From positions 73,036,001 through 73,100,000 of the forward strand of contig NC_043003.1 of the NCBI RefSeq assembly GCF_006345805.1: DNA of 64,000 nucleotides, written 5' to 3'. A program made the position numbers and the translations under genes. Origin of the DNA: Octopus sinensis. Taxonomy: Eukaryota. Positions 10,974-57,318 of the stretch are shown here, in pieces. The notes under the pieces are model-generated. The model was not told the DNA's origin and did no database searches. It was given only the letters and a program-made list of their open reading frames with translations. Each line of letters begins with the position of its first letter. The stretch's first letter is position 1.

Positions 10974-11128
10974 GAATGGAAGTGTTGTTATCAACTTTAG
11001 TGTGACATTCTCCAAAACTGCCGTTAACGAAAGTGAAGTCGTATTCCTCCTCAAAGGGTTCAACACTAGAGACACTTTTCGTTTCTCCAAGGTTCAAGTC
11101 TACCTTACACCAGCTCAACTACAGTCTC
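10974..11128 (+). CDS. Host gene exon: C-terminal half of a SEA domain
   Basis: Acceptor tttattattgtag ends at 10973 and donor GTGAGT starts at 11129. The exon translates (R)NGSVVINFSVTFSKTAVNESEVVFLLKGFNTRDTFRFSKVQVYLTPAQLQS. GSVV followed by an alternating hydrophobic strand is the SEA autoproteolysis motif. Starts in phase 2, ends in phase 1. Confidence 0.7.
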
Positions 11129-12060
11129 GTGAGTGTATATATTTTTTATTACTTATAACACCCATAAATTTTAAAAAAAGCATAAATCACGTAAGTTTTC
11201 TTTTCGTTTGCTAGAAGCTAATTATTTTCATATTATGGCCTATTATCCTTATGAGCCTTAATTGTAGCAAAACGCTAATGCGTATATTACTGAGACTATT
11301 ATAGTCATATTTCTACTTCTACAAATTGTGTTGTTAATGAGATTAATGATACTACTACAGTGATACTTTAAAAATGCTATACCTGAGGTAAATATTCCCG
11401 TAAAGTGTGACACTAAACAATATCGCCTGTGGTTAAAAGCGAGTGTGGAACTACATTATATCATCTGAAAATGACATTATCTGTCGCACTATACCATCAT
11501 CAAAAATCGATAGTAACACGAACGCTAGACTAGATGATCTGGAGATATCATTTGAGATCTGAGTTGATACAAAAAGAGGAGATAACAAAGGTGTCATCAA
11601 ACATATTTCTTCTCCCTCGTCTTGTTGTTATTGTTGTTGTTGTTCTTCATCTTTTCTTCTTCTTTTTCTTCTTCTTCTTCTTCTTCTTCTTCTTTTTCTT
11701 TTTCTTCTTCTTCTCCTCCTCCTCCACCTCCTTCTTCTTCTTCATCTTCTCCTCCATCTCCTTTATAATGGCAATAATGGTTTCTCATTTAGGCACAAAA
11801 CCATTAATTTTGATAGTAGGAGGTGAGTCGATATCCACTCCAACACTTAACTGGTAGTTTATCTTATGTACCCGAAAGAATGAAAGGCAGAGTCGACCGC
11901 GGGGAGATACCTGCAAGGAAGGTTCTTGGCATTTAAGTTTACTTGTCGTAGCTTGATGACAGGAATTTTTTCCAACAGTATAATATGTTGTGCATATGTG
12001 AAATAATAATATAATAATATAATAATAATAATAATAATAATAATAATAATAATAATAATA

Positions 12061-12395
12061 ATGTCTCTGAAAGAAATGGAGAAACTCTCAAAATACAAAG
12101 ACCTGGAAATAGAGGTAACTAGAATGTGGAACCTGAAAACAGAAACAATTCCTATCATAGTAGGTGCATTATGCATGATGAAAAAATATTCAGACAATAC
12201 ATAACAAAAACACCAGGACTTACAAACACATATAACATACAGAAAATTGCACTACTAGGCACTGCACACATCCTACGCAGACACTTTCCATACAATAACC
12301 ATCAGAGCATCACAACAAATCACAGCACATACCCAAGGCACACAGAGCTGCACTCGTAGTGAAGTGAAAGCACGCTATAAAAATAAAACTACTGA
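12061..12395 (+). mobile_element. R4/Dong-like non-LTR retrotransposon 3' end
   Basis: SLKEMEKLSKYKDLEIEVTRMWNLKTETIPIIVGAL...YNIQKIALLGTAHILRR (REL endonuclease C-terminus), flanked by (AAT)n. Confidence 0.75.
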
Positions 12396-13044
12396 ATAAT
12401 AATAATAAAATAATAAAATAATAATAATATAATAATAATAATAATAATAATAATAAATGCCCTGATGCAGTACCAGGCAGCGGCTCTCATGGCTTCTGAT
12501 CTTAACTGATTGGAAGTGTTATCATGTACATTGTTTTGTCTTGGTATAAAAGATGGGCTACAGCAAATATTCTGCTCAATACCACAGATTTGCTTGTCAG
12601 TTGTTTGACCTTAACCAGTTGAGCATGTCCCTTAGTGGCTGACGATATGTGCATCTCTGATCACGAGCAGAAGTAGTGGGGGAGCATCATAGCCATGTGT
12701 TGAGAGGGATTCTTTTGGGTTTGAATAGTTCACCTCTGGAAACATGGGTGGTTCTTTCAACATCCTTAAACAACCCTTATTCAGGGACCGTTTGAAGCGG
12801 GATGGGCTACTCAACCTGAAGAAAATTCTAACTGGGCCCCACCTGCAAGATCATGTGCTGTTTATCTTGATATGAGATCACCATGTCGCACACATATGGT
12901 TGTGATGCATGTGCCTGGTATACCTTTATCAGACGGGTAGTCATGATGGGTATATTGGGCTTCGTATATTTTACCCCAGTGTCACTTTGATGGCATGAAC
13001 TGCTCTCTCACTCAATAATAATAATAATAATAATACGCACCTGT

Positions 13045-53620: not shown

Positions 53621-54829
53621 GTCGTCTCGTCGAACAATATGGTACTGGACAAATGAACTGGTTAAATGACCCGTGATCTGGTTCAGGACAGGGAGTGGGA
53701 TGAGGTTACAAGTAAGATAGCCAGTATCACTTAGAAATGTGCTGTGAAAATGCAATGTCCAGAAGATCAGGGAGAGGTGGTAATCACATTATGGCCTTCT
53801 CCATAATTTACCACCCGACTGACGTGCTTTGCAGGTATTACAGTCAATGGAAGAGACAGGAGGAGTGCAGTTTTAACATCAATAGATATCCTTTTCTAGA
53901 CATGATATCTCTGCCGATATATACAAAATGCATGCAATTTTTCTTGAAATGTGCCTCCATGAATCGAAACCAGATCCCAGTTGCAAGATATTGAAATAAT
54001 AATGAAACATCATAATGTACATATGTTTTTGTGTTAAATGCAAAAGGTTTTTGAAATATTTAGTAAGATATTAATAAAATTATATTTCAGCGATATCCTC
54101 CAGAAACAGTTTGAAATGAATTTAATACGGTATATCATGATTTTGATTTCGTCACAGGAAATTTAGTCATATCAAATTTGAAGAAGTCAGTCTGCAAACA
54201 CTGCAACTTCTTAGAAACTCATTTATTTTTGCTGCTGTTTGTATCCATTGATATAAATTTACTTTCATAGCAGCTGTTTAAAACAAGTTACCCTAAGTCA
54301 GACGTATATCTGACATAGTGTACCAAGTCGGTGAGATTCAAGACCTTGACTATCATTCAAGCAGCTAACTGAATATAATTATAACCGAATTATTATTTTA
54401 GAAAAGTTCACAAAATCGAATATTAGTTTAGACTTCCCGTTATAAAACACAATTTGGTTAAAATTTTATTATAATTTAGTTATAATTCTTTGAAGAAGAA
54501 TAAAATAAACGATACGTTAGAATTTTCTATTATGGCATGCTTGTTTTATTGCATTTATTAAAACTTAATGGGACTGTTTTTTGCTGTTACATATTCTCTC
54601 AATTTTCGCCTTAAGTTCTCATGCTTAATTTAACTTTTAACACTTGCTAATTCACATTGAAAAGTATCATCAATATCTAACAGATCAATTCAATTTACTA
54701 GTAATTCTTTTGAATTGACTGAATCGTTACAACTTATCATTTCTTCATTTCTACTTTTACCTCTAAATATAAGAACCTTCATGTTTTGGCAAATAGTCAC
54801 TACTAATACTTGATAAGTAATATTTCTTT

Positions 54830-55030
54830 CAAATTTTGGTACGAGGCCAGCAGTTTCAGAGTGGGTGAAGTCGATTACGTCGACCTCATACTCAACTGAT
54901 ACTTATTTTATCGGCCTCGAAAGAGTTAAAAACGAAGTTAACCTTGGCAGAATTTGAACTCAGAATGTAAAGACAGACGAAATGCCGGGAAGCATTTTAC
55001 CTGGCATGCTAACTTTTCTACCAGCTCACC
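54830..55030 (-). mobile_element. tRNA-derived SINE, family 1
   Basis: Reverse-complement homology to 49641..49875. Confidence 0.7.
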
Positions 55031-57099
55031 ACTCATAAGTAATGTTAAATGCCAAACTTTTCACGGTCCTTGTTGCTCCAACGAACAAGGGCATAAACAT
55101 GTTTAGTAATAATCAGTGAATGAGAAAAACGTTTTCTGCTGGATAGCAGTTTAGTGTGTTACGGACATAGAAATGGTTTTTACTTAGCAACGGACGTCAA
55201 CGAAATACCGCAAGTTATCAATGCTGTAAATGCTCCAAGTAGTTATTAATAAATTACAGCAACCAAAAATCTAACAGGATAAAAAAGGACAAGAGAAAGC
55301 GGTGAAGCCAAACCCAAGTACACAGCTGATGTTTATTTTATCGAGATTATATGAATGATAAGGGTATTTCTCCTCGGTGGGAATTTGACATCAGAACATA
55401 TAGCAAAGCTGATGTAAAATATTTCTTCCGGTTTTTGTTTCTATCATACATTAACGTTTAAAGAATTTTATAGAATTGTTAATAAACATGAATTTTATTA
55501 CAAATATGTAAATGATATAGAAGCAAGGACATGGTCACGTGTTGGTCAAGTATTAACTTGGAATTGATATCTTTTATACAGGCCATATATTCTGGCCTAT
55601 AATATCCATTAAGAGCAATGAATATTGCGTATCGCATTGTAAATACTTCTAATCCTATGCACGTGTGTATGTTTGTCTTGTCTCTGAACCCAAATTTGAT
55701 TGAGATAGAAAACAGATCAGAATCAAGTAAATTTGTTTGTCAAACATCCATGATCTATTTGGAGAGAACAACAAAAATATTTTAGAGTAAGGTGACACAT
55801 ATTGATTGTTGTATGAAAAAGAAATATTGATTGAATTAAAATAAGAATCGAAATAATAAACCACCCATTATCCCTACGTCACTGTCCGGGTTTCCGGCCT
55901 GTAACATCGTCCGGATCGATTTTGCATTATTATTTCCAGCTCAGAGAAAAATAATGATTTCTTCCTTTGGAACATAGCCATATATTTCTTGTCCGATAGT
56001 ATATTCGACTGAATCAATTCCAGTGTATACTGTTGCTTCTTTTTCGATTGCAAAGAGTCGAAAACCTATAGACGCCCGTAGTGGCATTTGAACTTAAGAT
56101 CAAAAAGCATAGAATTAAAGTTGGGGATATATTTAGTTCGATACTCTCCAGTTCTAACACATTCTTTAAAACCGGTAAATAAAGTCGACGTGCTTTATGT
56201 CCGGACAACTCACAGTAGAGAAAGTACTCGAATACCTATTTCTAGACTTCTTATTCGAATCTGTACAATTTTAGAAGTCATAGCATTGTCATAGCATTCC
56301 TGTTTGGCTTCATGAACACGTTAAATTAAAAATTCAAGATTCGCCTTACGGCACATGCAGTCAGTGTGTGGACATTTAATATTATCAAATGAAGTCGGAT
56401 GTGTACATTACAATGTCTGTATTTCATGAGATTGGAGAATTTCTGTTTGAAGTCTTAGGATTAGTAAAGTATCTCAACGCAAAATCAGTTTGGTGGAGCC
56501 ATTATATTCATATAGTAACCCCTATGATTTTAAAGATGGAACATTTCCTTCCAGTTTTGCTATGAGATAGAAGCAAACATTGAACACGATTTGTTATGCT
56601 ATATTGTGTGTATTTATAGTTACGCTGATAAATCAAATCCGTGGATACGATACTGCGCCAGTGGCGAGATACGACCTACCAACCTAATATTTGTAAGCCG
56701 ATATATCTGCAGATTCGACAACAAGCAAGTCTTTATTCTACTTAAAAGAGATGACGCGAAAATTGCGATTAATAATGTAATATATCACTTTGATCAGGGA
56801 AGCCATCTTCCCTGGAGACTATTGGAATATATGAAACTTCAACTATGACAAAGAATTCTGTGAAAGTATTAGGATAAATATATTGAAAATATTCTATATT
56901 ACATAGGATGTATAAAGATCGATAAAGCAATTGATGTTATACATATATGTATATAAATATCTAAAAGGATATGTGCTTGTATATATATACATAGCTCCAT
57001 AGCTATGTAGGTACTAACGTATGTATGAATCTATATATGTCACTTTTAATTTCCATTGTAAAAACAGAAATATTTATGACACAATATCTACAATTTCAG

Positions 57100-57318
57100 A
57101 AGATTACTGTGCTGATGGGCATATCTTCAAAGTCTACCCGTTTGATGCTTGTAGTGAATCGTTCGTGCATTGTGCAAATAACTACAGCTACATCGCAAAT
57201 TGCCCAGACCATCATTGCATTGACGCAGATATCGGAATATGTGTGATGTGTGACTGCAATCAGAGCAAGTCAGTAACTGGAACATATGAGAAAAACAAAT
57301 CAACTTTACGATATGAAG
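57100..57318 (+). CDS. Host gene exon: peritrophin-A / CBM14 chitin-binding domain (73 codons)
   Basis: Acceptor tacaatttcag, donor G|GTATGT, symmetric phase 1. YCADGHIFKVYPFDACSESFVHCANNYSYIANCPDHHCIDADIGICVMCDC has CBM14-like Cys spacing (C-x13-C-x6-C-x9-C-x12-C) with YP, FxxC and CP signatures. Confidence 0.78.

Follow-up and report, generated by a model that had tools for sequence, protein, structure and literature searches.

The question raised by this locus is what kind of cell-surface protein is encoded by five widely spaced exons of Octopus sinensis, by which end it would be held in the membrane, and what its other end would contact. The exons (E1 to E5) lie between positions 10974 and 57318 of a stretch of 64,000 nucleotides (contig NC_043003.1, positions 73,036,001 to 73,100,000 of the forward strand, assembly GCF_006345805.1), which we call the window and to whose first letter all coordinates refer. 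An initial annotation, made from the letters of the window, had joined them into one mosaic extracellular protein consisting of a SEA domain, a mucin-type stalk, two immunoglobulin (Ig) domains and a chitin-binding CBM14 domain. We found that they form the middle part of the uncharacterized gene LOC118764280. The reading that we prefer, with a probability of roughly 60%, is that the product is a membrane-tethered, stalked chitin-binding glycoprotein, a single-pass type II protein that would link or organise a chitinous layer.

All five exons are on the forward strand, and every one of them has a polypyrimidine-AG acceptor and a GT donor. E1 (10974-11128) encodes the C-terminal half of the SEA domain (residues 162-213 of the protein XP_036360732.1), as indicated by its splice sites, frame and tblastn match, and E2 (22063-23712) encodes a Thr/Ser-rich acidic stalk of 550 codons in a single exon (residues 214-762), recognised by splice sites, tblastn and composition. 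E3 (45644-45967) and E4 (51538-51858) correspond to a Cys-bearing module of 108 amino acids and a module of 107 amino acids, respectively, both with phase 1-1 boundaries and both identified by splice sites, tblastn and conservation, and in the case of E4 also by HMMER. E5 (57100-57318) encodes a divergent CBM14 (peritrophin-A)-like module with eight invariant cysteines, on the basis of splice sites, Pfam and conservation. E1 starts in phase 2 and the remaining junctions are all in phase 1, so that E2 to E5 are symmetrical 1-1 exons, and the five exons joined together give 2669 nucleotides, that is, 889 codons without a stop. The translated product is an exact substring (residues 162-1050) of XP_036360732.1, a protein of 1116 amino acids deposited as 'uncharacterized protein LOC118764280 isoform X1' of Octopus sinensis. 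Splice sites, phases and this exact match agree with the five exons and approximately 889 stop-free codons reported before, and the match to the NCBI gene model also bears out the claim of a single mosaic protein. The five-exon observation is correct and recovers a gene model that automated annotation had already produced.

The range of LOC118764280 covers about 160 kb in the assembly GCA_006345805.1, and the window holds its middle part only; tblastn with the N-terminal 165 and the C-terminal 70 amino acids revealed no counterpart in the window for the first 161 and the last 66 residues of the protein. With one of the protein models of the gene as the query, tblastn placed only its residues 162-1025 in the window. 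An exhaustive HMMER search with E4 against 1.84 billion cluster representatives gave one real match, XP_036360733.1 (isoform X2 of the same gene), with 100% identity; four further matches listed in that search were repeat proteins aligned over short stretches and were rejected as noise. By the length of the reading frame, the 550-codon open run of E2 would be expected by chance about 3e-11 times in the window, and open runs of at least 107 codons were seen 47 times, against about 12 expected by chance. Since E2 is the only exon beyond chance by this measure, the reality of E1 and of E3 to E5 rests on the match to the annotated protein and on their 88-100% conservation in Octopus bimaculoides. 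An exact look-up of the 533-residue ATG-to-stop reading frame of E2 returned no match, and tblastn with each exon as the query found no paralogous exons in the window.

The orientation of the protein was deduced from its full-length form. The sole strongly hydrophobic segment comprises residues 70-97 (mean Kyte-Doolittle value 2.6), with the anchor at about residues 72-97, and an N-terminal signal peptide is absent from the full protein. The segment is flanked by ...STKRTYSPC on the N-terminal side and by SSHNIDDNG on the C-terminal side, and these charges (KR and DD), read by the positive-inside rule, point to a type II signal anchor. The predicted order outward from the membrane is the transmembrane helix, SEA with its GSVV motif, the stalk, E3, E4, two CBM14 modules and the stop. 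A classic type I mucin was rejected, as the transmembrane helix is N-terminal to SEA.

The same observations bear on the suggestion, made in the initial annotation, that the exons could encode part of an adhesion receptor, namely its ectodomain, with the C-terminus located outside the window. The succession of SEA and Ig-type modules, the latter unproven in the octopus protein, does recall the adhesion G protein-coupled receptor ADGRF5 (GPR116), and the gene continues past the end of the window, so GAIN and seven-transmembrane (7TM) regions could in principle have followed further downstream. However, what follows is one more CBM14 exon of 66 amino acids: the full-length protein stops 66 residues after E5, the same stop is annotated in all isoforms of two species except early-ending forms such as X4, and the exon with its TAA stop is also present in the genomic contig L001. 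In contrast to ADGRF5, the octopus protein is anchored at its N-terminus, and Pfam revealed no GPS, GAIN or 7tm_2 domain in the full-length proteins. Of the regions that the initial annotation had proposed to seek downstream, a predicted transmembrane segment was found, at the N-terminal end, and GAIN and 7TM were not. The stop, the missing receptor domains and the position of the anchor led us to reject the adhesion receptor ectodomain, which we regard as hardly credible.

The SEA domain is split by the edge of the first exon of the window. E1, which carries the half of the domain from GSVV onward, had no Pfam match by itself, and a score above the gathering cut-off requires the N-terminal half, which is encoded upstream, outside the window. 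With this half included, the isolated O. sinensis SEA region (residues 98-219) scored 27.4 bits against the gathering score of 26.4 for PF01390 (E 3.7e-6), and within the full-length proteins the domain scored 24.0-24.7 bits. The GSVV autoproteolysis motif is located at 10978-10989 in E1, where it overlaps an N-G-S sequon; the sequence NGSVVINF (residues 162-169, window 10975-10998) lies within the Pfam match and is unchanged in O. bimaculoides. Neither the whole SEA region nor E1 gave a meaningful match to PDB sequences with phmmer. The earlier assignment of a SEA domain with GSVV is, on these profile scores, supported but marginal. The SEA domains of MUC1 and matriptase self-cleave at G|SVV, and proteins cleaved in SEA normally remain associated.

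The stalk encoded by E2 contains 20.6% Thr and 13.1% Ser (34% together) and is rich in Asn, Asp and Glu, which agrees with the Ser/Thr-rich stalk of the initial annotation, though Pro makes up just 4.6%. Its length is variable. A perfect (100%) tandem duplication of 2 x 75 nucleotides at 23156-23305, on the forward strand, encodes TSGDITDSTQITMSETHDYTKHNTT twice; this unit of 25 amino acids is the only repeat in E2, and it is present as a single copy in isoform X2, in O. bimaculoides and in Octopus vulgaris. The O. bimaculoides protein has an additional Ser/Thr-rich segment of 146 amino acids at the start of the stalk (residues ~216-361), for which tblastn found no counterpart in the window. 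Judged by composition, the stalk is a length-variable Ser/Thr-rich spacer and not a classic mucin with tandem repeats rich in Pro, Thr and Ser (PTS).

Two further observations concern E2. The difference between isoforms X1 and X2 at 23156-23305 may be a copy-number polymorphism or an effect of RNA-seq alignment rather than alternative splicing. A partial copy of E2 (20608-20769, forward strand), about 140 nucleotides in length, is located 1.7 kb upstream in intron 1, within an open frame of 107 codons; positions 20632-20769 align with 22389-22532 at 91-96% nucleotide identity with an indel of 6 nucleotides, and no annotated isoform uses this copy.

The two modules that follow the stalk had been assigned as Ig domains, and this part of the initial annotation was not upheld. 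E3 has two cysteines with 73 residues between them and the motif C16...DxxxxxxxFxC90, with no Trp in register. E4 carries C-x12-W, followed by YRFAVKF and STIRCAL; Cys, Trp and Cys are arranged in the Ig manner, and 60 residues separate the two cysteines. With matches reported up to E 10, Pfam listed no Ig family (I-set, V-set, C2-set, Ig_2/3) for either module in O. sinensis or in O. bimaculoides; even so, the HMMER filters remove most matches above E ~0.1. Searches of PDB sequences with phmmer gave no match for either module, and the two showed no mutual similarity. The confidence of the AlphaFold2 models was low, and Foldseek with the E4 model found no match in the PDB at E <= 0.001. By motif and exon phase E3 and E4 can be described as Ig-like, and as Ig domains they are unproven.

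The C-terminal part of the protein consists of E5 and the last exon, which encodes 66 amino acids outside the window. The last exon has the canonical six-Cys pattern C-x15-C-x5-C-x9-C-x15-C-x7-C, with YVYC and CPNGYFY, and alone it scored 18.2-22.5 bits with CBM_14 depending on the species, the value of 22.5 being that of contig L001, which derives from a further Octopus-like sample and in which the exon has a phase-1 acceptor in addition to its stop. E5, which is weak alone, and the last exon together reached 25.2-25.8 bits in two stretches, against the gathering score of 22.1 for PF01607. In both stretches the alignment covers one and the same central portion of the model, with the cysteines in register. 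Hence the CBM14 call was sustained once the downstream exon had been included, and the count of eight rather than six cysteines in the CBM14 exon of the window was also correct: E5 has eight, all of them invariant in three Octopus species. A phmmer search of PDB sequences with E5 returned nothing meaningful, and in Pfam the joined product of 889 residues, like the exons of the window taken singly, yielded no more than a weak CBM_14 match.

The unusual features of these modules leave room for a different function, in which the Cys-rich C-terminal modules would bind a protein or another glycan, for instance as a pattern receptor of the immune system that detects parasites or prey bearing chitin, with the beta modules acting as Ig-like interaction domains. 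A ligand other than chitin would suit the atypical E5, with its eight cysteines, its C-x6-C spacing and its low score alone; the Ig-like Cys-Trp-Cys signature of E4 would suit a recognition molecule, and the conserved cytoplasmic tail of 71 amino acids could signal. However, the last exon encodes a CBM14 of canonical form, the Ig status of E3 and E4 has no statistical support, and no signalling motif was identified. We consider such a recognition or adhesion molecule improbable.

A search with the full-length protein retrieved only two further relatives, O. bimaculoides LOC106874046 (1237 amino acids, 90% identical, gene range 162 kb) and the partial O. vulgaris model CAI9725906. In this search and in the HMMER search with E4, the detected relatives were confined to Octopus, and no paper was found under the LOC, XP and UniProt identifiers of the gene. 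Between O. sinensis and O. bimaculoides, the identity was 100% for the transmembrane helix, 100% for E5, 98.5% for the last exon (E6), 94.8% for SEA, 94.4% for the cytoplasmic tail, 93.5% for E4, 88.4% for the stalk and 88.0% for E3; E5 was 100% identical across three Octopus species. The membrane anchor and the CBM14 tip thus appear as the most constrained parts, which fits a job that needs both ends of the protein.

The comparison between species is also relevant to the possibility that the gene model is an artefact, in which the annotation fused a transmembrane-SEA-stalk gene with a neighbouring gene for the beta modules and CBM14. Several features of the locus invite such an explanation, namely a gene of about 160 kb with introns of 5-22 kb rich in transposable elements, an isoform (X4) that ends after E3, and an early UniProt model (A0A0L8GY43) that consists of the stalk exon only. 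On the other hand, all junctions are phase-compatible, E3 begins with neither a start codon nor a signal peptide, and the same joins were annotated by NCBI in O. sinensis and O. bimaculoides, while the joins between E2, E4 and E5 were annotated in O. vulgaris by a different group. In that separate annotation (CAI9725906), E2 is joined directly to E4 ('DVSP-I-PPK') and E3 is skipped; use of the same E2 donor and the same E4 acceptor would yield exactly this join. A fusion of two genes is therefore, in our opinion, very improbable.

Two alternative 3' ends were noted. The terminal exon of isoform X4 is located inside the E3-E4 intron at 46453-46583 on the forward strand (stop at 46581-46583), has a phase-1 acceptor and encodes EAAYLGIVDRK...DISK. 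The X4 protein ends after E3 and is devoid of E4 and of both CBM14 modules, so it would be made without the chitin-binding tip. The annotation of O. bimaculoides isoform X3 includes a homologous tail, and for this reason the truncated form may be real. A further possible terminal exon at 61767-61822 on the forward strand, also with a phase-1 acceptor, encodes AIISATFVDMQKPALNLC followed by a stop, and 17 of 18 residues match the C-terminal tail of O. vulgaris CAI9725906; this could be a further alternative 3' end, or else an artefact of the annotation.

Among known systems, the membrane-proximal part of the protein shares its layout with the type II transmembrane serine proteases (matriptase, enteropeptidase, HAT/DESC), which likewise have an N-terminal tail, a signal anchor and a SEA domain with G|SV(V/I) just outside the membrane. 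In contrast to them, the octopus protein has no protease (no Trypsin match was found by Pfam in the full-length proteins) and no CUB, LDLa or SRCR domains, and its SEA is followed by the stalk, two beta modules and two CBM14 modules. With the transmembrane mucins (MUC1, MUC12, MUC13, MUC16, MUC17) it shares the membrane-proximal SEA with GSVV and a long stalk of the O-glycosylation type, and in both SEA may be a non-covalent, force-sensitive joint. The mucins, however, are type I proteins with SEA N-terminal to a C-terminal transmembrane segment and with Pro/Thr/Ser repeats, whereas the octopus protein has the opposite polarity and distal CBM14 modules; no sequence relatedness to the transmembrane mucins was detected outside the SEA profile.

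A combination of CBM14 with mucin-like regions is found in the peritrophin-type mucins and other CBM14 matrix proteins, such as insect intestinal mucin, the peritrophins, molluscan Pif/BMSP and a shell protein of Lottia. These are secreted by means of a signal peptide, unlike the octopus protein with its signal anchor, its cytoplasmic tail and just two CBM14 modules, both at the tip. The resemblance supports another explanation, according to which the ectodomain, stalk and CBM14 together, is shed or secreted, through cleavage in SEA and dissociation or by some other route of shedding, and leaves the cell to enter a chitinous matrix as a structural or lubricating component, the membrane stage being a delivery step. 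A mucin region with CBM14 is the architecture of the peritrophin-type mucins, and the GSVV motif provides a possible site of shedding. The tendency of SEA-cleaved proteins to stay associated speaks against this, and conservation of the signal anchor (100%) and of the cytoplasmic tail (94%) suggests that the membrane-bound part matters. The Lottia shell-matrix protein Lotgi1|232880 combines SEA and peritrophin domains (PMC3374290), which again favours a matrix component. Taken together, we find the shed or secreted component unlikely, but worth keeping in view. The Lottia protein also qualifies the statement of the initial annotation that the five-part combination was not recognised: the architecture as a whole is unusual, but the pairing of SEA with a peritrophin domain has a precedent. 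The architecture is an unusual recombination of modules known from membrane mucins and from peritrophin-type mucins.

Several observations weigh against the membrane-tethered chitin-binding glycoprotein that we prefer. The SEA region of O. bimaculoides scored 20.4 bits, under the gathering score of 26.4, and the stalk is Pro-poor and almost free of tandem repeats, contrary to what a classic PTS mucin would have. AlphaFold2 predicted all-beta secondary structure both for E4 alone (mean predicted local distance difference test, pLDDT, 36) and for the region from E3 through the last exon with an alignment of the two species (pLDDT 32.5), in each case at a confidence too low to show a fold. E5 alone reached only 14.8 bits (E 0.033) with CBM_14, and its spacing, C-x13-C-x6-C-x9-CP..., is a variant with C-x6-C where CBM14 usually has C-x5-C. 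CBM14-like modules do not all bind chitin. Finally, the gene models are automated, and their RNA support is presumed from the presence of several isoforms. Gene identity and exon structure were established directly, as were the profile matches to SEA and CBM14, the single hydrophobic segment near the N-terminus and the pattern of conservation; from these we infer the topology, the glycosylation, the cleavage of SEA, the binding of chitin and the tethering role.

If the preferred reading is right, the protein would have a cytoplasmic tail of about 71 amino acids, a signal anchor at about residues 72-97 and a juxtamembrane SEA domain, followed by a Thr/Ser-rich stalk of 550 amino acids that is presumably heavily glycosylated. 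Two beta-rich Cys modules of about 107 amino acids (putatively Ig-like) would come next, and the two CBM14 modules at the C-terminus would form the membrane-distal tip. In this way a chitin-binding tip could be displayed about 100 nm from the apical membrane, where it would attach or organise a chitinous layer on the outside of the cells bearing the protein (sucker lining, gut cuticle, beak or radula). The link between epithelium and a chitinous structure that the initial annotation had suggested is, in this form, still a reasonable conjecture. If the SEA domain cleaves itself at GSVV, it would retain the ectodomain by non-covalent contacts and could serve as a release point when the protein is loaded or the cuticle is shed. 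A more specific version of this proposal, in which an Octopus-restricted type II tether with a distal CBM14 pair on a glycosylated stalk joins the apical surface to a chitinous lining and the self-cleaving SEA domain serves as a mechanical release at shedding, is put forward here as a tentative suggestion.

The rest of the window is AT-rich (~34% GC) and contains many microsatellites and decayed transposon reading frames, as in a cephalopod-like genome; tRNA and Rfam scans of the window gave nothing. A decayed transposon-like open reading frame in an intron at 30557-30985 (forward strand) had a weak Pfam match to RVT_1 (E 7.6e-4). Further decayed intronic frames at 27707-27970, 16960-17334, 1472-1888 and 20982-21245 (reverse strand) and at 47753-48148 (forward strand) resembled by eye reverse transcriptase, GIY-YIG or mariner-type sequences, with no significant Pfam match. 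Downstream of E5, two Asn/Lys-rich frames on the reverse strand (61218-61742 and 62093-62572, of 174 and 159 amino acids, respectively) had no Pfam match and are probably remnants of repeat elements.

To our knowledge, the molecular basis by which molluscan epithelia hold, organise and shed their chitinous linings, such as the sucker and gut cuticle, the beak and the radula of the octopus, is poorly understood. A membrane-anchored protein that combines a tip able to bind chitin with a SEA joint that may be sensitive to force would be a concrete candidate for the link between epithelium and lining. Should the more specific tether-and-release proposal prove true, the protein would be a molluscan counterpart of the arthropod tethers with zona pellucida (ZP) domains that connect membrane and cuticle, assembled from mucin and peritrophin parts and with a polarity opposite to that of the vertebrate membrane mucins. 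If its function is not borne out, the analysis still leaves a re-derived gene model and a domain annotation that the databases lack. The gene would in addition exemplify the lineage-restricted assembly of widespread extracellular modules.

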